Shown here one piece after another: positions 43,334 to 60,693 of a stretch of 64,000 bases of DNA. Origin of the DNA: Zancudomyces culisetae HAW-14-8 (Eukaryota > Fungi > Kickxellomycota); NCBI GenBank assembly GCA_052426225.1, contig JBNJNM010000006.1:1116001-1180000 (forward strand), read 5' to 3'. The notes under the pieces were generated by a model. The model made no database searches. It worked only from the letters and a program-made list of their open reading frames with translations, and had not been told where the DNA came from. How positions within the stretch are numbered: position 1 is the first letter of the stretch; each line of letters begins with the position of its first letter. A program made the position numbers and the translations under genes.

Positions 43334-46114
43334 TTATAATTCATCGTGTTCACGTTCACGTTCATCATCCTCACCCTCATCCTCATCTTCATCCTCACCA
43401 TCACCATCTCCATCACCATCCACACCACCACCACCTGCCTTCCCAGAACCCTTAGTGTCCTTGACTTCAGCTTTGGGCTCGGGTTTCTTTCCCAGTAATT
43501 GCTCCATCTGCTGGTCCGACTCGCCAACACCCAACGCATCAATCGCATTGGGGTTATTGAAGCCAGTGTTACCAGCCACAAGTATATCCTGATGCATATT
43601 CATATCAATGTGAGGATTTTCGGGGTCAGGAATGTTCTTCAACAACTCGTAATCTTGAAGCGACAGTTTTTTAACTTTTCTATTATCGGAAATTCTATTC
43701 TCGCTTTTCTTTCCTCCACTGACTTTTTTTTTTTCTTCCTCCTCCTTCTTGTCGGTATTGGCTTTTCTAACACCTTGTGGATCCAAAAAGTTTTGGAGAA
43801 ACTGGTCGGCTACTGCCATCATTGGATCGTTCGCCAAAATCTCGTGAATGTTTATGTCAAGTTCTGGTTGTTGCTCTTGTTTCTTCCCACCCTTTCCATC
43901 ATCATCATTATCATCATCATTATTATTATTGCTTGGTTTTTGAGCTTTCTTTGGAGGTGTAGGCGGAAGAAAAAAGTAGTTGGCTAATTGAACCATTGGG
44001 TCAAGCTGCTCCAATTCTTTTTTAATCTTGCTTTCTTCTTTTTCTTTTTCCAACTTTTCTTTTTCCAGCTTTTCTTTTTCAGCCTTTTCTCGTTCTAGCT
44101 TTTCCTCCGCTTCCAATTTTTCTTTTTCCAATTTTTCTCCAAGAACTTTCAATTCACCTTTCTCTCGAGTTTCCTTCTTTACACCCTTAACCAAGTCTCC
44201 GTATTCTCCAAGCAACTCATTGAGTTTATCAATTTGCTGCTGGCGAAGCTTCTCAAGCTCCTTTTTCTTTTTAAGCAGCTCTTCACTTGTCATGGTACTA
44301 ACATCAAAGTCGGTAGGATCTTTATTCTTGACATTGGACTCTGGCTTATCTGGATTCATCTGATCTTGGTTTTGGTCTTGGTTTTGGGCTTGGTCTTGGC
44401 GTTGTCTTTGCTTCTTTTTTAAATTGGACTCTTTAAGTTCATCAAGAGATATAACGCGGACATTATTGCCGGCTGGGAAATTACCCCCAAGTAGTTCTTT
44501 TACAATTTCAGCTAGTTTGGCATCCGAGTTTGGATTTAAATTTAGATTTGAGTTTGATTTTGATTTTGAATTTGATTTTAAATTTGGATTAGAGTACTTT
44601 GTAGATAGTTTTTGTTTGTTTTTATCTACAAAATTGATAATATTGTCACGATTTTCAAAGTCAAAATCCGATTCAGAATCTAAAGTTGAAGATTCTGATG
44701 TATCTGCATCTGCATCTGCATCTGCATCCATATTCGATGCAGCCAAGCGTTGATATTTGGTTCTTTTCTTTTGGGCTTCAAATAACGTCAGATTCTTTAC
44801 AATCGGAAAACACTTGATTTCCAATCCATCAGTTACCACCTTATCATAAAACGCATTGACTTTACACAGTTCCGGTAGCTGCACCACCACAAGATACTGG
44901 CATATCGATGTCTCAGAAACCTGTGAAATATGAGTTTCGCCCCGCGGATTACAGTGGTACTGAACCTCGACTGTGCGCGGCCTGTTGGTTTGGTCACAAA
45001 GAGTTCCTTGTGACCAAACCTGCGAAATGTACCTACGTTTGCCGACTGTTTGAATGCGGGATTTAGACAGTTCCTTGATAACTTGGTTTTCGGATCCGGT
45101 CGTTTTATCTTGATTTGCTGTATGTGGTGGTGGTGGTGGTGGTAGTGGTGGAGAAGCAATCTGTGGTGCCAAACCCAATTCTATCCGATTTTCATACCTT
45201 CCTAGGAAAAACTCCAGTTCTCCAAGATTGCGGATTCTTGGAGAATCGTACTCTGACGGTTTGTGGTATTGCCGTATATGCTTGCCGTAGCAGAGTTCAT
45301 ACACCCACCACCCACTATTGTAGTTGATACAGGGTCCACTTTCCAATTCTGCTAATACTTTTATGCCTGCTTGAAGATCTTTGGTAGTGGTGGTAGCGGG
45401 TGAAGACTGTTGCTTGTTTTTTGCAAGAGATTGTGGAGTTTGTTTTTTGCCTTTGGAATTCTGTGCTTGTAAAAGTGCCTTTTCTGTATCATCACCTTCC
45501 TCTTGTTCTTGTTCTTGTTCTTTCTCATGTTCTTGTTCGTGTTCACCTTCTTCAATCTCATCTTCCTCATCTTCATAGTCGTCGACTTGAGGAATTAGAC
45601 AGAATAGCTGTTGTTTTTGTTCAAGGTTGTCACTGTTTTCGTTTTTGTTTCCGTTTTTGTCGATTTTAGTGTTGGTGTTGATAATTGGGCTTTGTGTATT
45701 GGTAGTAAAGACATTGGCCAAATAAGTAAGCTCAGGATTGATTCCACGGATTCGGTAAAACGACGAGATTCTGTAGCGATCTTTTACCGAAACCGAGTCA
45801 TCCGAGGGGTGAGTTCCGTATCCTGCAGCATCCCTTATAAGCCGATTGTTGTTGAGTTCAACGTACCGGATGAATCTGTCGACATTTCCGGGCTTGATGG
45901 GCAGTCGGTGGCTGGTTGATAGAACGTATTTAGGATATTCGTATAAATCGTCGAGTAGAGAAGCAGGGTATGCTTCAGCCTTGAAGGAATCGCTGTCGGT
46001 GTTCGAGCCTGTGTTTTCCGAAGCTGTTACAAATAAAAGAGCAGAATGTAGTTGAAAAATATAGGAGAGTAACAAAGTACAGGATAAGAAAAAGGATCTA
46101 ATTGGAACAAACAT
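43334..46114 (-). CDS. YOS9: ER lectin Yos9/OS-9 (MRH domain) with a long low-complexity C-terminal extension and HDEL
   Basis: Signal peptide; CINYNSGWWVYELCYGKHIRQYH, QVWSQGTLCDQTNRPRTVEVQYHC, VSETSICQY; C-terminal HDEL. Confidence 0.9.
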   Translation of the reverse strand: MFVPIRSFFLSCTLLLSYIFQLHSALLFVTASENTGSNTDSDSFKAEAYPASLLDDLYEYPKYVLSTSHRLPIKPGNVDRFIRYVELNNNRLIRDAAGYGTHPSDDSVSVKDRYRISSFYRIRGINPELTYLANVFTTNTQSPIINTNTKIDKNGNKNENSDNLEQKQQLFCLIPQVDDYEDEEDEIEEGEHEQEHEKEQEQEQEEGDDTEKALLQAQNSKGKKQTPQSLAKNKQQSSPATTTTKDLQAGIKVLAELESGPCINYNSGWWVYELCYGKHIRQYHKPSEYDSPRIRNLGELEFFLGRYENRIELGLAPQIASPPLPPPPPPHTANQDKTTGSENQVIKELSKSRIQTVGKRRYISQVWSQGTLCDQTNRPRTVEVQYHCNPRGETHISQVSETSICQYLVVVQLPELCKVNAFYDKVVTDGLEIKCFPIVKNLTLFEAQKKRTKYQRLAASNMDADADADADTSESSTLDSESDFDFENRDNIINFVDKNKQKLSTKYSNPNLKSNSKSKSNSNLNLNPNSDAKLAEIVKELLGGNFPAGNNVRVISLDELKESNLKKKQRQRQDQAQNQDQNQDQMNPDKPESNVKNKDPTDFDVSTMTSEELLKKKKELEKLRQQQIDKLNELLGEYGDLVKGVKKETREKGELKVLGEKLEKEKLEAEEKLEREKAEKEKLEKEKLEKEKEESKIKKELEQLDPMVQLANYFFLPPTPPKKAQKPSNNNNDDDNDDDGKGGKKQEQQPELDINIHEILANDPMMAVADQFLQNFLDPQGVRKANTDKKEEEEKKKVSGGKKSENRISDNRKVKKLSLQDYELLKNIPDPENPHIDMNMHQDILVAGNTGFNNPNAIDALGVGESDQQMEQLLGKKPEPKAEVKDTKGSGKAGGGGVDGDGDGDGEDEDEDEGEDDEREREHDEL

Positions 46115-46589: not shown

Positions 46590-49577
46590 TTAGAAAACCA
46601 ATTTGGCATGCCAATTGGTGGTAGATACAAAGACTTGAGGGTCACGAATGGTGCAGGAACCACCTCTTTTTTTGGTACAAGAAACAGTGGTGTTGTGGGA
46701 AAAGAGATCGTTGATGTAAACCATAGCGGTGGAGAAATAAGTGTTGCGAAGACCTCTGACAATAATACGTTCATAACGGACATTGGCCTGAGAGTCAATG
46801 AAAGGCTGAGGAGAATCAGAGTTGGAGTTGGAATGGGAGTTGTAGTAATTGGAGGAGTGAGAAGCATAGATAGTAGCGTTTTTGAAAGTAAAATCGGTAT
46901 AGATAAATTGGTTCTTGGTATAGTCATAAGAGTTACCATCGTCAATGTAGAGCGAGCCAACCGAAGGAGAACCAGTTCTTGAAACAAAGACAGTGAGAGT
47001 ATAAGGATCGTTTTTCATCAATGCAGAAGAACGACGTTTGCGTTGGCGAGAGGCAATAATGTTGCCACCAACACCATAAACAAGAGTCTGGTCCAGAGGG
47101 GCGGGGATATCTGAGGGCAAGACATGGCCAGAGAAATGAGAATCACCAAGATAATCATAATAAGCTTGGGTGTCAGGAAAGGCGAGTTTGATTGTAGAAA
47201 GCTCGCCAGGAGTGGTAGCGGGAGCAACCATAAGAGCAGGCCCAAACATAAACATTTTGTTGTCGTCGAAAAAGTTGGAGGCAGAAGGGAAATGCGCCCA
47301 AATAGGAGCAGTAATAGGAAAGCCTGTCTTTGAAGCAATAAAAAACTGAGTATATAAATAAGGAAGCAGTGAATATCGCAATTCAACTGCTTTTCGAATA
47401 ATCTCTAAATACTTGTCCTCAAACAAATACGGCTCTCTACGCTTAGAATCTATATGCGCATGCGCTCTAAAAAACGGATAAAACACTCCCAGCTGATACC
47501 ACCGCGCCAACAACTCGCCGTCCGGATTGCCAAAAAACCCTCCAACATCTGCCCCCGAAAAATGCATCCCAACCACATTGTTGGTCAGCACCATCGCCAC
47601 ACTCACCTCCAAATGGCTCCACTCCGCCTTGTTGTCCCCCGTCCATATCGCCCCGTACCGCTGGCTGCCTGAAAAATACGCCCGCGACAACACAAACGGC
47701 CGCTGTCTCCCTCCCTCTCTCGCCTTCAGCCCGTCGTATGTCGCCTTGTGGTACATCATTCCATAGATATTGTGGATGTCGCGGTGCTCTATCCCGCCAT
47801 AGTGCACCACGTCCTTGTCCATCGTGATTTCTGGCCCGTTAAACACCGATGGCTCGTTCATGTCGTTCCATATAAACGTATTCGTTGTGCTGCCATTGTA
47901 CTTTTCCAACCCAAACTGCTCACTTATATACGTCATTGCTTTCGGATCAAAATAATCCACCCAGTTTGAATCTCCTGGCCAGCACCATCCGTTGTATACG
48001 CTGCCATCCCGTCGCTTCAAAAACATCCCCTTCTCCTCTCCCTCTCGCGATATATAATAGTTGCTGTCTCGCTTGATGTGTGGATCTACCACCGTCACCA
48101 GCTTGCGTTTCCGCCCTTCCAACCCTTTCTGCATTGCTACTGGATCTGGAAACTTGTTGTAATCCCATGTAAAATACCGCTTGCCGTCCGTATGCTCTAT
48201 ATCCAGCCATATCACATCATATGGAATCTTATTCTCGTCCATCTTCTGGTCCACCTCCGCCACATCGCGCTGGTCCAAATAATTCCATCGGCATTGGTGA
48301 TACCCTATTGCAAACTCCCGCGGCAACTCTGTCGTTCCCACCATCCCTGCATACTGCTCAAATACCTTTCTTGGTGTTGGTCCTGTCATCACAAACACAT
48401 CCATTATCCCACTCTCACTTATCCAGTGTGTATTCACCTCTTTTCTCGCTTCTCCTCCCATCCCTACTATCTTTTTAAACATACTCACTGCTCCACTCCC
48501 CTTCTTCTTTCGAATATCTATCCACGTCTCTGCTGAATTCATCCAAAACACTCCACTTGTTCTCTCACTGCTGTGTGATATCATAAACGGAACTGACCCA
48601 TATAGCGCCATAGGACTGTCTTCCAAATGCTCAAATACATCCAAATTATACAATCGGTATGGCTCCTTGTACTCTCCATTTTCTTGCTCCCCTGTCTCCT
48701 TCAATGAAAAGCTCGTCGCGTGTTCTGGAATCCCAAACACATGCTGGCTCCCCACAAAGTTTATATCCACCCCAATCGATTCCGGTCCTCGCGACCTACT
48801 ATCCGTCCATGTCTTGAACTTTTCCTCCCATCCTTCCTCTCCCTCCTTCTTTTCCTTTGTTACCTCGAATTTGAAAAACCCTTTTGTATTCAATTCCACT
48901 ATCCGTTCCTCTCCTTCTCTAACTATTATTGCCCACGGATTTGCCTTTATTTCCACTACTTTTTCCACTCCTCCCTCATTTTCTCCATATTTTACTATAT
49001 ACTGTTTCCCATCTTCCTTTTCTCCACTATCTGATTCTTTACCCTTCAGTTCAAGTTTGTTTTTGCTTTTAACCAATCCTTGCTCCCCTCCTTTCAGTAC
49101 ATACTCCCCAGCGCCTCTATACCGTTTATGCTTTTCTTTGATTCCATCAACTTGTACCCGAACCACATCATTTTCCAAAAACACAATCTTTAATCCCAAA
49201 TCTTCCACCACCTCCTCCTCTCCTTCCTTCTTTACATTTTCTTTCTCCGCTGCCTTCGCTCCAATCTTTTCAAGCACCGCCCTAAATTCCCCATCCTTCA
49301 ACTCCACACTCCCATCCCTGACCCTGTACCCTTCAAAAGCACTCTTCTCCTTCTCATTGACACTACTGCCAAGCTTCCAAATATCCTCTCCTACTTTCCT
49401 CACCCCCTTTGCGTACTCCCGGTGTCGCTTACAAAACGATGCATCATTACACGTCTTGAAGTCTTCTTTTTTCACCCCGGCTGTAAACCCTACAAATAAA
49501 CAAATAATAACTGCCGTGGTACAAAGTACCATCCGGTAAACCGTGGTTTTCCCTTTCCAAGCTTTCACTGTTCCCAT
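46590..49577 (-). CDS. ROT2: Glucosidase II alpha subunit (GH31)
   Basis: Signal peptide then VKKEDFKTC..ASFC.R.R, GIPEHA, PYRLYNLDVFE, GYHQCRWNY, DVIWLDIEHTDGKRYFTWD, catalytic WNDMNEPSVF, WTGDN, GADVGGF, PFFRAHAHIDSKRREPY. Confidence 0.97.
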   Translation of the reverse strand: MGTVKAWKGKTTVYRMVLCTTAVIICLFVGFTAGVKKEDFKTCNDASFCKRHREYAKGVRKVGEDIWKLGSSVNEKEKSAFEGYRVRDGSVELKDGEFRAVLEKIGAKAAEKENVKKEGEEEVVEDLGLKIVFLENDVVRVQVDGIKEKHKRYRGAGEYVLKGGEQGLVKSKNKLELKGKESDSGEKEDGKQYIVKYGENEGGVEKVVEIKANPWAIIVREGEERIVELNTKGFFKFEVTKEKKEGEEGWEEKFKTWTDSRSRGPESIGVDINFVGSQHVFGIPEHATSFSLKETGEQENGEYKEPYRLYNLDVFEHLEDSPMALYGSVPFMISHSSERTSGVFWMNSAETWIDIRKKKGSGAVSMFKKIVGMGGEARKEVNTHWISESGIMDVFVMTGPTPRKVFEQYAGMVGTTELPREFAIGYHQCRWNYLDQRDVAEVDQKMDENKIPYDVIWLDIEHTDGKRYFTWDYNKFPDPVAMQKGLEGRKRKLVTVVDPHIKRDSNYYISREGEEKGMFLKRRDGSVYNGWCWPGDSNWVDYFDPKAMTYISEQFGLEKYNGSTTNTFIWNDMNEPSVFNGPEITMDKDVVHYGGIEHRDIHNIYGMMYHKATYDGLKAREGGRQRPFVLSRAYFSGSQRYGAIWTGDNKAEWSHLEVSVAMVLTNNVVGMHFSGADVGGFFGNPDGELLARWYQLGVFYPFFRAHAHIDSKRREPYLFEDKYLEIIRKAVELRYSLLPYLYTQFFIASKTGFPITAPIWAHFPSASNFFDDNKMFMFGPALMVAPATTPGELSTIKLAFPDTQAYYDYLGDSHFSGHVLPSDIPAPLDQTLVYGVGGNIIASRQRKRRSSALMKNDPYTLTVFVSRTGSPSVGSLYIDDGNSYDYTKNQFIYTDFTFKNATIYASHSSNYYNSHSNSNSDSPQPFIDSQANVRYERIIVRGLRNTYFSTAMVYINDLFSHNTTVSCTKKRGGSCTIRDPQVFVSTTNWHAKLVF

Positions 49578-52500: not shown

Positions 52501-55500
52501 TCAGTAGACGTTGTTACAGTAGGTCGATGTTAATATTAGGACATATGGCATACAAGATATGATGTTTTCTACTTTTCAATAATAAGACTATTATTTAATA
52601 TTGGGTAAGTGGTCTCGCACCCCCCTCCCCCCCCCCTTTTCCTTGATAGCCACCGAGTTAAAAGTTGATTATAAACGAACTTGAAATAACAAGTTAACAT
52701 CAACTGTATTGTTTCAGTATACTTAAATTGAAATGTATTAAACGGGTTTTTCCCTCGACATTTTGAATATATCTAAAAACCAATTTACACTCGCTTTTCA
52801 ACAAGAGTTTGAAATACTATAAATTCTTCAAACAACCAACTTATTAATACAATCTTAGTAGAAAACTGATAGACTTAGTGAACAAGTTGCAATTTAAATT
52901 GTGAAAATATAAAAGTTATTAGTTCCATGGTTCCTATGCCCTGGGTAAGTATACAGCCGCCGTTTTAATTTATTATAATCTGTTGAAGATGGTCTAATAA
53001 TGATATTACCACTAAATAGATTACAATCAATACAAGTGAAATCTTATCTCGACACGATAAACTAAAAACGTGTGAATGGTTCGAGCGTTATTCAAATGAT
53101 AGCAATCAGTGGCGTGTGTGGTAAGCAAATATTTGATTACTGTTTTAACAGTTTTAACAGTTTTAACAGTTTTAAAATAGAATTTTTATCACTCAGGTAT
53201 CATTACTATATTCATCTTGTATCACATAGAAAACTACAACAAAATAGGGATTGGTGGCTATATTGATTTGAATCAAATGGGTAAAAAAAATAAAATAGTT
53301 CATTTCATGAAAGTTTCAGCGCAAGTAATTGCATTTTACTCGCCTTTTTTTTCGAACGGAACAATATCTGATGAACATCTGCTGCGGTATTATCAGACAA
53401 CCGCCTAGAGAAAAAACATGTTTACTGCTCTTACTTTCTGCCGTTTTCATACTGTTAACCTACTAGAATATGCTTTTTTTTTAATACCAGAACCACTGCC
53501 GCTTTTTTATAAAATTGAACTGAGCCAAATACAAGTAAAAAAAGAAAGATAAAATAAAAATCTCATCATTCCATTCCCAGTCACATCTACCCATGTACCT
53601 GAACATTCTTGACTTTAATTTTTTAATATAATACCCCAATCCATCTACGTTTATATTTTAGTTGGAGAACGAAATGATAATGAGATACCTTGATCTGCTA
53701 GAAAGTGAAGGGAATGAAAAAATATTTTCTGGTCTTAGTAAAATTACTAAATTTTGTGTAAAGTCTACCTGCCAGGGAGCTACCAGTGAACATGTAGGAC
53801 AACTAAATCTTTGACGATTACTATTATTCAGTTTTTCCCTCACCATTTCATTCTTTTACTCATTCACTTCATATCTCCCAATCTTTCCCCCTATTTGGTA
53901 AACCATACAGTAAACCATACAGTAAAATATACAGTAAACCAACCCATTACATTTTTTTATTACCCTAAAAATAACAGTTTACCAGTTGGTGTTAAAAGAG
54001 TTCCCAATGGGGACAATTCGATTATTTGGCTAATCCAACTACAAATATTTTCGTAGGTGAACCATATTTATGCTTTACATGTATATTAATTTTACAAAAA
54101 AACCATGGAAGAAATGTTTTACTATAGTTGAAATTCAGCTAATAAACGCCTCTGTGGGTGCCACAAAAACTAAAATATTCACACATAAGACAATTAATTA
54201 GCTACACCACCATATAATGCACTGATATCATAATAATATATTAAAATGGGTTGTGTGGTTTGTGTTTGTTCTCAACTATCAACTATACTTCAATTCTGTT
54301 GCAATTCTACATTTTCACCCAAATCGTAAATGCTATTATAGTGTTTCCTTATTTTTCCGAGTGTTTTTAGCATGCGTATATCTACTTTTTACAAACTGAA
54401 TAGTACTTTTAAAGTATCCCACTTTCTAAACAGTATTGCACTGATTTACCCTAAAAAAATTATAATTGATATTTAAAACTTTTTCGGAACTTTGTATTGG
54501 TGTCAGCAAATTTCCGCTTGCCATTAATAGTCACTTGGAAAATGTCTACCTTGCTTTTACCACAGCTTAGAGGTATTAATCTCATTAAAAACGCACATAT
54601 CGCGACCCTAAAATCACTATTTCCCAAGCCACTTTTTAATGTGTGAGCAAAAAATGAGCTTTAGGAAAAAGTCATTTAGGACCAGATTCAAGCACAATGT
54701 TCAGAATGTAAGATGGTTTTTTTTTTTCTATTTGTAAGAGCAATTCGTCAAATGTTCCAGACACAGCAGGAAAATAGATTTCAAACAATGGTTGTCAGAG
54801 CTTGAACACATTATCGCGCGAGTATAGCGACTCCATGTGGCTCGACGTAAGGGTAAAGTAGGGGTGGGATGAGTAAGATAAGTTTAGTTTTTAAGCTTAT
54901 TGTTCTTTTTTTTCTGTGACCACATGGTGAATGATTTATTTCCCAACCTAAAATACGACTAACAATCGAAAAAAATCAACAAATAACGCAAAGCTTAAAA
55001 CCAAAAAAAAAAGAAGTCTTTATCGGGTTATTAACTACATTCACTGCTTTATTCTTTTTCTATTACATGAAATAATTTATGTGATAACCAAAACTATTGC
55101 TGATAACAATCACGATCAATAAAGGTGACCAATATTGGTATTGTAAAGAAAAAGACAAACACTTTTTATTATGATCTTAAAAAGGTCACTCTCATATTTT
55201 ATGATTTGGGAAATCCTAAAACCATTTCAATCTAATTGTTTGTTGAGTTAAATGTTCATGATGTTAACGTTTGTAGGTTAAAACGATTTAAACCTTCAGA
55301 GTAATTTGTAATTAGAAACTGTCACAAAATTAACTAGCACTTCGAACTTCAATTATCATTCTGTAGACCCATGATACTACGTCTACTATATTGATAAATA
55401 TAACAATTCTCAGAAAATTTCTACTTATTAATACATTTCACTTGTATTCAAAAATATTCCTAGCATTATGATCGACAAAGGCTACCCTGGGAAATGTAAA

Positions 55501-55698
55501 TATGCAGTGTGTGCGTTGATTGACTCTGTTATATATATGTATAAGTTTAATACATAATAGCTATCTTTATACTAGATACTAAGATACTAATTCACATTAC
55601 CAATTATTATATATTTGGTCCGTTTTCCCCCTTCTAGGAGTTACAACATCGAATAAATAACATTTTCAAATTAAAAAGTGTTCGTATCGGATTAATAA

Positions 55699-58600
55699 AT
55701 GATTTCTTCAAAAAAAATATACATAGCTATATGTATACTTACATCCCTCGTTGGGGTAAACTCCAATCCTATTTCCAATAGTGATACACAGTTCTCAGAA
55801 AACTGCACAAAAGTATACGGAAATAAAGTGTTCTATTTGGATAGCGGCTGTTCGAAATGCAAATGCAACGATGAAAAGCTTGAATGTAACAGGTTTGCCC
55901 TGTGTGATCCTTCAGATATGGCAGATGACTCCGCACTGAGCTACAGTGAAGCAAAAAAGTGGGAATCTTACAACAACTGCGTTGCCAAAAACGGATACGA
56001 TGTGTTTACAGCAGCAGATGGGTCATCAAGTTGCATATGTACACTAGAAGGATCCAAATGCACTACTCAAAGCGTTAGTAACTCTTCTGAATTGCTGGAT
56101 ATTATCAAACAGGATGATAATAACTCGTCAGACGCTGATAGACTGAAGCTGGAGTTTACAAGTGCAAACATAGAAATGCATAGAGAGTGCGTGGATACAT
56201 TTGGAAATGGTAGTTTTTACCCTACACACGGGTGTTCAGTATGTATATGTACACTAAATGGCAAAATGTGTAATGATGGGTTGTGTAAACCGAAACTCAA
56301 TAACTCAGTACACAGAATCAAAATGATGGGTCGCTCAAACAGCAATGAAGCAAATTCTGAGGGCAATATCTTCAATAAACTAATGGCTAGATTGTACAAA
56401 AAATCAGCTATACCTCGATCACACGCACCATACAACACAAATTCAGATAAAGCAAATTATAGTAGCTCATACAAAGGGTATGAGGTTAAAACTATTATTT
56501 CTACGGTAATTGTAACTAGTACGCAAAATTCCACCGTAACAGAGACTGTAACCGACTCTGGTACTGGTTCTGAAACTGTCACAGTAACTGAGACTCAATC
56601 ATTTACCGAAACTAAATCGTTTACCGAAACTCAATCGTTTACCGAGACTGAAACCGTAACTGGCACCGGTTCTGCTACAGTAACTGAAACTGAATCCTTT
56701 ACTGAGACCGAGTCGTTTACCGAGACTGAGACCGTAACTGAAACTTTATCTGGCTCTGGCTCTGGCTCTGTTACAGTAACTGAAACTGAGACTGAAACTC
56801 AGACCGTAACCGAAACTGTAACTGAAACTGATTGTAGCTCTGTATCTGGCACTGGATCTGACACTGGTTCAGTTACCGTCACAGTAACTGAGACTGAAAC
56901 TCAGACCGTAACCGAAACTGCATCTGGCACTGGCACTGCTTCTACTACAGTAACTGAGACACAATCGTTTACTGAAACTGCGACCGAGACCGAAACTATA
57001 ACAGAAACCGTATCTGGTTCTGCTACAGCAACAGCAACTGTAACAGAGACTGTAACAGAAACTAGCTCTGGTTCTGCTACAGCAACTGCTACAGTAACAG
57101 AAACAGTAACAGAAACCAGCTCTGGTTCTGCTACAGCAACAACAACTGTAACAGAAACTGTAACAGAAACTAGCTCTGGTTCTGCTACAGCAACTGCTAC
57201 AGTAACAGAAACTGTAACGGAGACCGGCTCTGGTTCTACCACAGTAACAGAAACAGTAACAGGTACTGAGTCTCTCACTGTTACCTTGACTGTAACCGAT
57301 CCATTAACGATCACTTCAACACTAACTGATTTCCTCACTATTACTTCCACAATCACCGATCCATTAACAATCACTTCAACATTAACTGATCTTATTACAA
57401 TTACCTCAAGCTTAACTGACCTCCTTACTATCACCTCAACACTAACTGAGCCACTTACTATCACCTCAACACTAACTGAGCCACTTACAATTACATTAAC
57501 ACTAACTGATCTCCTTACCATCACCTCAAGCTTAACCGATATTCTAACTATCACCTCAACATTGACTCAGCCACTTACAATTACATCAACACTAACTGAT
57601 CTCTTAACTATCACCTCAACACTAACTGAGCCACTTACAATTACATCAACACTAACTGACCTCCTTACCATCACCTCAAGCTTAACCGATATTCTAACTA
57701 TCACCTCAACACTAACTGAGCCACTTACTATCACGTCAACACTAACTGACCTCCTCACCATCACCTCAAGCTTAACCGATATTCTGACTATTACCTCAAC
57801 ATTGACTCAGCCACTTACAATTACATCAACACTAACTGATCTCTTAACTATCACCTCAAGCTTAACCGATATTCTAACTATCACCTCAACATTGACTCAG
57901 CCGCTTACAATTACATCAACACTAACTGATCTCTTAACTATCACCTCAAGCTTAACCGATATTCTGACTATTACCTCAACGTTGACTCAGCCACTTACAA
58001 TTACATCAACACTAACTGATCTCTTAACTATCACTTCAACACTAACTGATCTCCTCACTATTACTTCCACAATTACTAATCCACTTACAATTACATCAAC
58101 ACTAACTGATCTCTTAACTATCACCTCAAGCTTAACCGATCTCATTACTATTAGCTTAACTGTAACTGATCTTGCTACTGCTAGCGTAACTGTAACTGAT
58201 CTTATTACCGTTAGCGTAACAATTACTAATCCACTTACAGTTACCTCTACACTAACTGATCTCTTAACTATCACCTCAAGCTTAACCGATCTTCTGACTA
58301 TTACTTCAACACTAACTGAGCCACTTACGATAACCTCAACACTAACTGATCTCCTCACTATCACTTCAAGCTTAACTGACCTCCTTACCATTACAAATAC
58401 TCTAACTGTACCATTGACCATTACAAACACACTAACCGATCTTCTGACTATCACTTCCACAATTACTAATCCACTTACAATTACATCAACACTAACTGAT
58501 CTCTTAACTATCACCTCAAGCTTAACTGATCTCATTACTATTAGCCTAACTGTAACTGATCTTGCTACTGCTAGCGTAACTGTAACTGATCTTATTACAA

Positions 58601-59052
58601 TTAGCTTAACTGTAACTGATCCGTTTACCATTACAAATACACTAACTGATCTCCTCACCATCACTTCAACCATCACTAACCCATTGACCATTACAAATAC
58701 ACTAACTGACCTCCTCACCATCACTTCAACTATCACTAATCCATTGACCATTACAAATACACTAACTGACCTCCTCACTATCACTTCAACCATCACTAAT
58801 CCATTGACTATTACAAATACACTAACTGACCTCCTTACTATCACTTCAACCATAACTAATCCATTGACTATTACAAATACACTAACTGACCTCCTTACAA
58901 TTACAAATACACTAACTGCAACAAGTACTAATATACTCACCGTTACCTCAACGCTAACCAATCTCCTCACCATCACCTCAACAATAACTAACCTCCTTAC
59001 CATCACCTCAACTCTAACAAATATACTTACAATAACTAATATTCTACCTTAA
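55699..59052 (+). CDS. Large secreted protein: three pacifastin/VWC-like Cys modules, TVTET-rich linker and about 59 Thr-ladder decapeptide repeats
   Basis: 1117-aa intronless ORF with a signal peptide (IYIAICILTSLVGVNS), TATA-rich upstream sequence (~55530), and no GPI or TM anchor at the C-terminus. Confidence 0.85.
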   Translation: MISSKKIYIAICILTSLVGVNSNPISNSDTQFSENCTKVYGNKVFYLDSGCSKCKCNDEKLECNRFALCDPSDMADDSALSYSEAKKWESYNNCVAKNGYDVFTAADGSSSCICTLEGSKCTTQSVSNSSELLDIIKQDDNNSSDADRLKLEFTSANIEMHRECVDTFGNGSFYPTHGCSVCICTLNGKMCNDGLCKPKLNNSVHRIKMMGRSNSNEANSEGNIFNKLMARLYKKSAIPRSHAPYNTNSDKANYSSSYKGYEVKTIISTVIVTSTQNSTVTETVTDSGTGSETVTVTETQSFTETKSFTETQSFTETETVTGTGSATVTETESFTETESFTETETVTETLSGSGSGSVTVTETETETQTVTETVTETDCSSVSGTGSDTGSVTVTVTETETQTVTETASGTGTASTTVTETQSFTETATETETITETVSGSATATATVTETVTETSSGSATATATVTETVTETSSGSATATTTVTETVTETSSGSATATATVTETVTETGSGSTTVTETVTGTESLTVTLTVTDPLTITSTLTDFLTITSTITDPLTITSTLTDLITITSSLTDLLTITSTLTEPLTITSTLTEPLTITLTLTDLLTITSSLTDILTITSTLTQPLTITSTLTDLLTITSTLTEPLTITSTLTDLLTITSSLTDILTITSTLTEPLTITSTLTDLLTITSSLTDILTITSTLTQPLTITSTLTDLLTITSSLTDILTITSTLTQPLTITSTLTDLLTITSSLTDILTITSTLTQPLTITSTLTDLLTITSTLTDLLTITSTITNPLTITSTLTDLLTITSSLTDLITISLTVTDLATASVTVTDLITVSVTITNPLTVTSTLTDLLTITSSLTDLLTITSTLTEPLTITSTLTDLLTITSSLTDLLTITNTLTVPLTITNTLTDLLTITSTITNPLTITSTLTDLLTITSSLTDLITISLTVTDLATASVTVTDLITISLTVTDPFTITNTLTDLLTITSTITNPLTITNTLTDLLTITSTITNPLTITNTLTDLLTITSTITNPLTITNTLTDLLTITSTITNPLTITNTLTDLLTITNTLTATSTNILTVTSTLTNLLTITSTITNLLTITSTLTNILTITNILP
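56536..57273 (+). repeat. Coding T/E/V repeats (TETQSF units and about four 18-aa SGSATATATVTETVTETS units)
   Basis: Repeated 54-bp tctggttctgctacagcaac...gtaacagaaac units. Confidence 0.85.
57274..59040 (+). repeat. Coding 30-bp tandem array (LTITS[T/S]LT[D/E/Q/N][L/P/I]) with 60- and 90-bp higher-order periodicity
   Basis: Units such as ccacttacaattacatcaacactaactgat / ctcttaactatcacctcaagcttaaccgat / attctaactatcacctcaacattgactcag. Confidence 0.95.
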
Positions 59053-59239
59053 AAGCAATTTCATTACCTCTATTCATGACTTTTATCTATACCACAAAAG
59101 AAACTAACTGTTTATTACCATCACCTCAACTCTAACAAATAAACTTACAATAGCTAAAATACTACCTTAAAATCATTTCAACTACCGCTATTCATGACTT
59201 TTTTTTTACACCACAAAAGAAACTAACTATTTATTACCA
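58998..59239 (+). repeat. About 120-bp direct duplication spanning the last codons, stop and 3' UTR of the repeat gene
   Basis: taccatcacctcaactctaacaaata...ctaccttaaaa...ctattcatgactttt...accacaaaagaaactaact occurs twice in tandem. Confidence 0.85.
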
Positions 59240-60693
59240 GATATCTCTTTTATATATTGTAACAACTACAAATACCAATTGGTGTAAATTGTCACAACCT
59301 CAACAAACTATCCACTATTTCGAAACCTACACCCCACGTATAAAATATCTTATCGTATTGGTATTGGAGTCACATAAAAATACTATATCGTAAGTGAAAA
59401 TTTACTCGACATTCATCTCGTCTTAGTATTAATTTCACCTTATTGTTTTTTAGTATATTTTCTGTTTACCTACGTCTACTAAATCAAATTTGGTTGTATT
59501 GCGTTTATTTTTATAGACATTAACCAAAGAAGAATAATTTTGCCCAATTCAGACATTGAGCCACAATTTGCAGTTTAACTGGCTACAAACGTATTCAATA
59601 CAAAAATAATAATACTCGGCTCATTTACGTACTCATATTATGCAACAATAAGCAAGAATTTATATATAAGCATAACTCGAAATATCCATAACAACCTGCT
59701 AATAGCTCATTAAATCTAAAAAATACCTTTCACTAAATTCGTTCTTACACTTTCTTTGTATTTGTCAAAATAATGATAAACTTTTCCAACTATAGTTTTC
59801 TTTTATAATATAAAATACAATCAAAAGCCGGGTTTGATCTTTAATTTTGTTACAAATTAGTCACACTAGTACTAGAATGTGGGTTTTGTGTTAAATGTAA
59901 TACATATCTGAAGCGCACTATCTTCAATTGAGATATCGTGAACTGGAGACAAATATGGTATCAAGCCAATAAAACACATGTATTTACACAGCCAAGTTCT
60001 AAACTCCAATCTCAATATGTGCTTTCTAATCTGATTTTGACCTATCTATCAGGAATTTGAGCACAGTTAATAGTAGAATTAAACGATTACAAAAGTTTAA
60101 TTTTTATTATACCTCAAAGTGGTATCAAATGTTTGTATCATTTTATTGGTTAAAAATCGAAATTTCAAATCTATAAATTATAATTTTTATAAAAGCTATC
60201 GAAAATCCAATTTTAGTTACATTTTTTTCTTCGCACTAAGTACACTTAACCTTTAATAAAAGAGAGATTAATTAAATAAAACCACATATGTTAAGACTTG
60301 TATATATTAAGATTATTTATTATTAATATATTATTTAGAAAAATATGGTATTCGATAGTGTTTAAGATATTTTTCTCTGCGGTTCTCTTTCGATGGATTT
60401 CGAAATGGTTTTTATACTTTTACTCCAGAGATTTTTCCATATAAAATTTTCTTATGTAAAGTTGCTATCAAACTATAAATTTGACTATTAAATTTATGAG
60501 TAACTGATGTGATTAACTACCGTGAGTTTAGTGTGTCAATGATTGCATCATTCATGTTATTCTGACGATTCTTTGAATTATTAGTTTCGGAATTCTTTCT
60601 AGGTTTCTTATTTCCTAAAATGGTCTGTGAATATTATTATAACAAATTTCATCGCGAAATTCATTTTTTACTTGACTTGGTTAGATTAATTTA

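Follow-up and report, generated by a model that had tools for sequence, protein, structure and literature searches.

A strictly periodic threonine-rich decapeptide array in a putative secreted surface protein of Zancudomyces culisetae, and a plausible beta-helical fold for it

The stretch analysed here (64,000 nucleotides of Zancudomyces culisetae HAW-14-8, contig JBNJNM010000006.1, positions 1,116,001 to 1,180,000 of the forward strand; hereafter the window) carries on its plus strand an intact open reading frame (ORF) of 1,117 residues (55699-59052), with no internal stop and no evident intron. The C-terminal half of this ORF is a rigid 10-residue repeat rich in threonine, which leads to the question of what such an array is for: an ordered rod, a glycosylated spacer, a fibre-forming or ice-active surface, or no protein at all. 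An earlier note, made from the DNA letters, had proposed a long ordered solenoid, possibly ice-active or adhesive. The explanation that we favour, with about even confidence, is a secreted surface or attachment protein in which the array would be an ordered, probably O-mannosylated beta-helix rod with a structural, anchoring or self-associating function for the pacifastin-like N-terminal head.

The decapeptide array and selection on its peptide sequence

Translated in frame, positions 57274-59052 read as 55 consecutive decapeptides in perfect register, with the consensus L-T-I-T-S-T-L-T-D-[L/P]. After decapeptide 55 a 4-residue slip is followed by three full units, their Asp exchanged for Asn, and by a truncated unit ending in ...NILP*. 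The whole amounts to about 59 units, as the earlier note had described, and forms the C-terminal 592 residues of the ORF. Threonine is invariant at positions 2 and 8 (55/55 each) and prevails at positions 4 (49/55, Ser in 6) and 6 (45/55, Ser in 10). Position 1 is Leu in 47/55 units, position 3 Ile in 50/55, position 5 Ser in 39/55 and Asn in 8, and position 7 Leu in 41/55; position 9 is Asp in 37/55 and Asn, Glu or Gln in 16 (Asp or Asn in 44/55, Glu or Gln in 9 more), and position 10 is Leu in 28/55, Pro in 20 and Ile in 5. The alternation of polar and non-polar residues is strict, with Thr at 205/275 even positions and Leu, Ile, Ser or Asp at the odd ones, and the array is far beyond chance.

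In composition the 592 residues comprise 37.2% T, 22.0% L, 12.7% I, 10.0% S, 6.2% D and 3.5% P. Leu, Ile and Val together make up 37%, the mean Kyte-Doolittle hydropathy is +0.74, and 42 Asp/Glu residues with no Lys or Arg give a net charge of -42. The scarcity of cysteine and aromatic residues noticed earlier holds (no Cys, and two aromatic residues, both Phe). N-x-S/T sequons are also absent because Asn sits only in the non-Thr register, a fact to which no meaning is attached. The C terminus, ...LTNILTITNILP, lacks the arrangement of omega site, spacer and hydrophobic tail; judged by eye it holds no canonical glycosylphosphatidylinositol (GPI) signal and no transmembrane segment, in agreement with the earlier observation. 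Tandem Repeats Finder reports periods of 60, 90, 150 and 180 nt in the array DNA. The SGSATATATVTETVTET units upstream of the array, likewise seen before, are present in 5 copies with a period of 54 nt (56992-57262).

Variation among the units is mostly synonymous. Per-site differences at codon positions 1, 2 and 3 are 0.24, 0.17 and 0.54 among the window units and 0.18, 0.12 and 0.51 among those of a near-twin paralogue located on the same contig, and the ratio of about 3:1 between third- and second-position differences among the window units argues for selection on the protein. The Leu of position 1 is encoded by all six Leu codons, and the window units comprise 44 different DNA versions and only 20 different peptides. 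Unit length is exactly 30 nt in the 55 + 115 units of the two genes (indels 0/170). Purifying selection on the peptide sequence and unit length of the array is thus supported. Because residue order and unit length are held despite near-saturated synonymous change, a constraint beyond composition alone is to be expected.

These counts bear on whether the array is part of a working gene. It is very unlikely to be an artefact of assembly, or a minisatellite that expanded recently, is not expressed and is in frame by chance. The public short-read assembly GCA_001969505.1 never spanned the array: its gene model ends at residue 151, at a contig end, and since that end lies just after residue 151 and upstream of the arrays, the array is missing from public protein sets. 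The locus is also unstable, as is evident from a 118-bp duplication that arose recently at its 3' end; here the stop codon of the first copy is in use, and the second copy matches the single copy of the paralogue (99.7% identity between window 59115-59698 and paralogue locus L011 5997-6580). Against an artefact or a chance minisatellite stand the 3.35-kb open frame, which runs on unbroken from a conserved signal peptide and cysteine head, the 5.07-kb open frame of the paralogue with the same C-terminal ending, and the excess of third- over second-position differences.

The composition bears on a second alternative, a glycosylated extended stalk without a stable fold. Dense O-mannosylation in the endoplasmic reticulum (ER) would turn the array into a bottle-brush of ~150 nm that spaces the head off the wall, as the Ser/Thr regions of Flo, Epa and Als proteins do. 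We give this explanation a minor but appreciable probability. A mucin-like disordered stalk is hydrophilic, S/T/P-rich and tolerant of variation, whereas the array is rich in aliphatic residues, hydrophobic on average and poor in proline, with no indels and mainly synonymous variation; the earlier judgement that it is not an ordinary S/T/P mucin stalk is therefore upheld. In a pure spacer neither the peptide sequence nor the exact length of 10 residues would have to be maintained while synonymous change approaches saturation, and the protein already has a separate hydrophilic spacer, the TET segment between head and array (T 38%, E 14.5%, S 14%).

Other candidates were rejected on the same sequence. 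A precursor of Kex2-processed peptides was dismissed since the array has no Lys or Arg and so no dibasic sites between repeats, and a hydrophobin or Cys-stabilised antifreeze protein since it has no Cys. Two V/S/R-rich minus-strand ORFs within the repeats, 56901-57554 (217 aa) and 57987-59006 (339 aa), have neither signal peptide nor head and were rejected as genes; they are by-products of a repeat that is stop-free.

Predicted fold of the array

The earlier note had suggested structure prediction followed by a Foldseek search, and both were performed on units 1-30. AlphaFold2, supplied with an alignment of in-register windows from both paralogues, returned a perfectly periodic beta-solenoid of 30 x (7-residue strand + 3-residue turn), with a mean predicted local distance difference test score (pLDDT) of 78.4 and a predicted template modelling score of 0.66. 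The Foldseek search with this model against the Protein Data Bank (PDB) yielded nothing at E <= 0.001. VIA-align against 48,161 chains placed all 300/300 residues on a right-handed three-sided parallel beta-helix, with the Pam1 tailspike as best match (Z 22.7, root-mean-square deviation (rmsd) 2.8 A). Below it came other tailspikes, PL6 lyases, polygalacturonases and the adhesins PfbA, TibA and HMW1; the matches as a whole, Pam1 included, span Z 22.7-14 over 240-300 residues. From this placement on three-sided beta-helices it follows that the model has three decapeptides per coil.

An internal control was provided by AlphaFold2 on residues 1-620, in which the TET spacer can be compared with the first decapeptides. 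The spacer received a pLDDT of 23-50 and the first 9.5 decapeptides 60-66 in the same run. Since the low-confidence spacer is also Thr-alternating, the solenoid prediction is specific to the decapeptides, and this separation of spacer and array is a further point against an unfolded stalk.

In the model each decapeptide would consist of a 7-residue amphipathic beta-strand (L-T-I-T-S-T-L) and a 3-residue acidic turn (T-D/N-L/P), and the units would stack intramolecularly into a parallel beta-helix with three units per coil. This would give ~20 coils and a length of ~9 nm in the window protein; the rod of the paralogue, with about 119 units, would be ~19 nm long. As in beta-helices generally, L1, I3, S5 and L7 should point into the core and T2, T4 and T6 form the outward faces, with T8-D9-x10 at the corner and Asp or Asn stacked at the corners of successive coils. 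Asparagine ladders are known from beta-helices, and by this analogy Asp/Asn at position 9 and Pro/Leu at position 10 would fit beta-arc corners.

Compared with known right-handed parallel beta-helices, the model superposes with Z 22.7-16 and an rmsd of 2.8-3.9 A over 243-300 residues, but with 5-11% identity, no Pfam match and no sequence relationship. In known beta-helices the coils are irregular, differ in length and have turns that are not equivalent; the window array, in its predicted fold, would instead place the same decapeptide on all three sides. TibA, going by its entry title, indicates that a glycosylated beta-helix adhesin can exist.

Several observations weigh against an ordered rod, beginning with the empty Foldseek search. 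AlphaFold2 has a known bias towards solenoids when repeats are idealised; the pLDDT stays below 90 throughout, with values of 64 to 78 across the five models, and the alignment for the fold contained solely the two paralogues' own repeats. The spacings of Pro-bearing units in the window are 3 (9 times), 2 (7), 5 (2) and 1 (1), and with such mixed two- and three-unit spacing the sequence itself does not encode a three-unit coil. For the same reason a 90-nt super-repeat in the DNA was rejected as independent support for three units per coil, its blocks being mixed 2- and 3-unit. Three Asp ladders without basic residues would be destabilising unless counter-ions are present, and co-translocational O-mannosylation of a sequence with 37% Thr could block compact folding. 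The family adds two more points: the paralogue arrays described below are hydrophilic (DTTT, TDPGTGGG, TETDTTT), which suggests a generic role as spacer, and the twofold difference in copy number between two near-identical paralogues implies that length is loosely constrained. Taken with the moderate-confidence beta-helix of AlphaFold2 and its VIA-align placement, an ordered beta-rod is plausible as a prediction of moderate confidence; of the earlier claim of an ordered solenoid, this predicted part stands.

The same strands could instead pair between molecules. In such a cross-beta assembly, a functional amyloid or cement, the array would form fibres or glue in the holdfast or trichospore appendage. 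Strict Thr/aliphatic alternation in 7-residue strands joined by short turns would suit it. Alternating polar/non-polar strand designs from the Hecht laboratory reportedly gave amyloid-like fibrils in de novo libraries, and to our knowledge such patterns are otherwise rare in natural proteins. The array lies at a free C terminus without a GPI signal, the curli subunit CsgA and FapC are among the weak Foldseek rows, and spores of Harpellales discharge a glue inside the gut of the host (PMC5954228). AlphaFold2, however, closes the array on itself, and with a net charge of -42 and no basic residues, lateral packing is unfavourable without neutralisation. Pfam and homologue searches gave no homology to known amyloid families, and no sequence match was obtained to the functional amyloids curli CsgA, FapC, HET-s and the Als amyloid core. 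Intermolecular assembly is accordingly considered rather unlikely.

A pacifastin-like head and its lineage-restricted family

The N-terminal head contains 16 Cys that are invariant in an alignment of 7 paralogues. Modules 1 and 3 follow the six-cysteine pattern C-x14-C-x2-C-x-C-x6/7-C-x4/6-C, with a conserved G and F and a CxxCxC core, and eight positions are invariant across 14 modules. Aligned by hhalign with Pacifastin_I modules validated by Pfam, the module profile reached a probability of 93.4% and an E value of 2.5e-7, and the remote relatives from Harpellales that were found with the head profile pass Pfam PF05375. The three top ESM atlas clusters for the head are arthropod pacifastin clusters (0.84-0.86), which is taken as a lead only. 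On the other hand, Pfam assigned to the head only sub-threshold VWC (E 0.038) and VWC2L matches and to the whole protein no family at E <= 1, and a PDB sequence search with the head-module profile gave chance rows only. Modules 1 and 3 thus have the six-Cys pattern of pacifastin inhibitors (PF05375), but the window modules lie below the Pfam threshold, module 2 has only four Cys, and the Cys5-Cys6 loop is variable and longer in module 1. The head is treated here as a divergent set of pacifastin/VWC-like modules with a putative activity.

In the 27.1-Mb genome the head matches 16 places. Full ORFs were read at nine head-bearing loci, so that at least 9 loci share the three-module head, each with a differing Thr-rich array. 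The closest relative is the near-twin mentioned above, 29 kb downstream on the same contig and beyond a transposon nest (C6:1200776-1205851; L011:977-6052). Its 1,691-aa ORF carries about 119 decapeptides and keeps the same C-terminal ending (...TITKILP*). Only 3/430 of the first codons differ from the window gene, and the two genes have at least 978 bp upstream and about 950 bp downstream in common. The pair is a natural copy-number experiment: with 59 and about 119 units behind nearly identical heads, copy number changes fast, as a glycosylated stalk would allow. A public fragment at a contig end (L026, LSSK01000156.1) has the N terminus MVPSKK like the paralogue and Ser at residue 72 like the window gene, a mixture that points to another strain or to an assembly in which the two copies were collapsed into one.

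The arrays of the other paralogues include STVTSVSTVTTASTQT, TDPGTGGG and TNTVTNTQTQTKT repeats, and one protein of 2,698 aa is T/I/V/S-rich and non-periodic. The TDPGTGGG octapeptides occur at two near-identical loci of differing copy number, L013 (C6:1857000-1861500) and L014 (C10:1164800-1169000), with 595 and 643 aa; a public fragment of this pair was automatically named 'GPI-anchored adhesin-like protein PGA18'. At L017 (C13:~998500-1007015, minus strand) an ORF of more than 2,800 aa, continuing beyond the stretch read, runs from pacifastin-like modules through SSTD/SSTE units and TETDTTT units into hundreds of DTTT tetrapeptides. The paralogues L012, L018 and L019 end in hydrophobic, GPI-signal-like tails. 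Such varied hydrophilic low-complexity Thr arrays behind one kind of head, and the adhesin-like automatic name, are what a stalk would lead one to expect.

Elsewhere in the genome the decapeptide array was found in no gene beyond the window gene and its near-twin, and searches of 5.8 billion proteins, in two length classes, gave no homologue of it. In full-length context the array query matched only bacterial linkers of the TQTVTQT type and an unrelated ETITLTDT protein, and a 300-aa piece of the array gave no homologue match. The ESM atlas returned for the array a recognition of 745 and a best score of 0.83 with unrelated low-complexity bacterial clusters, which provides no lead. The head profile matched 15 of 1.84 billion representative proteins; the best are near-identical to NCBI proteins of Z. 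culisetae, and the next best are Smittium simulii proteins that UniRef names 'Pacifastin domain-containing'. The protein family is lineage-restricted. In the literature searched it is undescribed, and pacifastin and Harpellales are not mentioned together.

The features of the gene are collected in Table 1. Its neighbours are ordinary eukaryotic genes and retrotransposon remains. Among the genes of the window is one for a GH31 glucosidase-II-alpha-like protein (43334-46114, minus strand), and adjoining it on the same strand is one for a protein with a PRKCSH (glucosidase II beta-like) domain and a terminal HDEL (46590-49577); the two could be a co-located ER glycoprotein-processing pair.

Table 1. 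Features of the array gene and its flanks, in window coordinates
Feature	Position	Strand	Basis or remark
Whole gene	55699..59052	+	ORF list; open frame of 1117 aa
Signal-peptide-like N-terminus MISSKKIYIAICILTSLVGVNS	55699..55764	+	Basic n-region, hydrophobic core, small residues; aligns in all paralogues; read from translation
Three pacifastin/VWC-like Cys modules, aa 36-69, 94-121 and 164-196; 6, 4 and 6 Cys	55804..56286	+	
Acidic Thr/Glu/Ser/Val spacer, aa 271-525 (255 aa); TETVTET, TETQSF and SGSATATATVTETVTET units	56509..57273	+	
55 in-register decapeptides LTITSTLTD[L/P]	57274..58923	+	Translation, AlphaFold2, VIA-align
C-terminal variant units: 4-residue slip, three LT[IV]TST[LI]TN[LI], truncated unit, stop	58924..59052	+	
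118-bp tandem duplication: last repeat, stop codon and start of the 3' untranslated region	58997..59239	+	2.1 copies, 88%
Upstream region common with the paralogue	54721..55698	+	98.4% identity over upstream and 5' coding sequence

Surface role and comparison with known systems

The genome contains at least 8 genes for protein O-mannosyltransferases (PMT; PF02366), on C8, C11, C15 and C21, their ORFs measuring 704-869 aa. Against typical fungal counts the set is large, and it fits the many Thr-rich secreted proteins. It would serve a disordered stalk, and given a secreted sequence with 37% Thr it also makes it probable that an exposed Thr ladder is glycosylated. In the beta-helix rod that we favour, the outward Thr would thus probably be O-mannosylated, the rod would be the structural, self-associating or wall- or holdfast-embedding part, and the flexible acidic TET spacer would hold the inhibitor-like head off it.

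Among known systems the fungal adhesins (Candida Als, Hyr/Iff-like Hil, Flo11, Epa), whose Thr-rich repeats are beta-aggregation-prone, come closest in architecture. A signal peptide, an N-terminal head and Ser/Thr-rich tandem repeats are also present in the window protein, as are fast copy-number change, a multigene family with variable repeats, and Thr together with beta-branched or aliphatic residues. The head, however, is a triple pacifastin-like Cys module and not Ig-like, PA14 or beta-helix, and Pfam gave no match to adhesin heads (Ig-like Als, PA14, Hyphal_reg_CWP). The strict 10-residue alternating repeat has no sequence homology to adhesin repeats, the window gene lacks a GPI signal, and the window protein is from Kickxellomycotina whereas the known adhesins are from Saccharomycotina. 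The closest functional analogy would be an adhesin-like surface protein with a beta-structured, possibly self-associating repeat region. The putative adhesive or holdfast role raised in the earlier note would fit a secreted protein of gut-attached Harpellales and the adhesin-like automatic name of the family fragment.

The ice activity raised in the same note fared less well. Here TxTxT ladders on a long solenoid would order water as in InaZ-type proteins or insect antifreeze proteins (AFPs). The latter are represented by TmAFP and CfAFP, with 12-15-residue disulfide-braced coils and TxT on one face, and by RiAFP of Rhagium, a small beta-sandwich with TxTxTxT. Set against these proteins, the array has a similar TxTxTxT motif on predicted flat beta-sheets, with Thr at positions 2, 4, 6 and 8 (in some units Ser at 4 and 6), but the flat sheet occurs only in the model of pLDDT 78, the array has no Cys and predicted 30-residue coils, and there is no homology and no Pfam match. 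The solenoid as predicted would space its Thr ladders by about 4.8 A, the geometry of known ice-binding faces (PMC12978214). InaZ-type nucleators, bacterial and from Mortierellaceae, have 16-residue coils, TxT, SLT and YGS motifs, charged C-terminal coils and Cys caps (PMC12978214). The window array resembles them as a long tandem array with Thr-x-Thr ladders on a predicted beta-solenoid, of 10-25 nm in the InaZ type, but its period is 10 and not 16, it has neither SLT nor YGS motifs and neither the charged C-terminal coils nor the Cys caps, and no homology was found. No Pfam family was matched, ice and antifreeze families included, and the protein searches gave no homologue in any cold-adapted organism. 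A larval mosquito hindgut offers no rationale for ice activity, and a secreted fungal Thr ladder is a prime target of O-mannosylation, which would mask the face. The resemblance to ice proteins goes no further than a TxTxT geometry, which would be common to all solenoids with Thr faces, and an ice-binding or ice-nucleating function is regarded as extremely improbable.

A more speculative elaboration, to which we assign a low probability, is a solenoid of a new minimal kind, with one decapeptide on all three sides and three Asp ladders through which pH or cations would switch folding or self-assembly. Such a protein might be secreted in soluble form and harden into a rod or cement coated with Thr as gut chemistry changes along the larval gut, becoming part of a holdfast glue and carrying a host-protease-inhibitor head.

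If the array is merely a glycosylated stalk, the protein is an ordinary though striking fungal repeat glycoprotein. If the predicted fold is true, a beta-helix with three equal sides and only Thr on its faces would arise from a 10-residue unit. As natural solenoids go this would be unusually simple, and it could serve as a scaffold for studying glycosylated beta-helices, the avoidance of amyloid in alternating sequences and engineered ice-binding surfaces. Z. culisetae is a fungus of the Harpellales that is attached to the hindgut cuticle of its host, the mosquito larva. Comparative genomics of Harpellales proposed only a fasciclin protein for attachment and found few or no Als, Flo or Mad homologues (PMC5954228). 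To the question of how Harpellales attach to insect gut cuticle, the family described here contributes a concrete candidate set of surface, attachment or host-protease-facing proteins.

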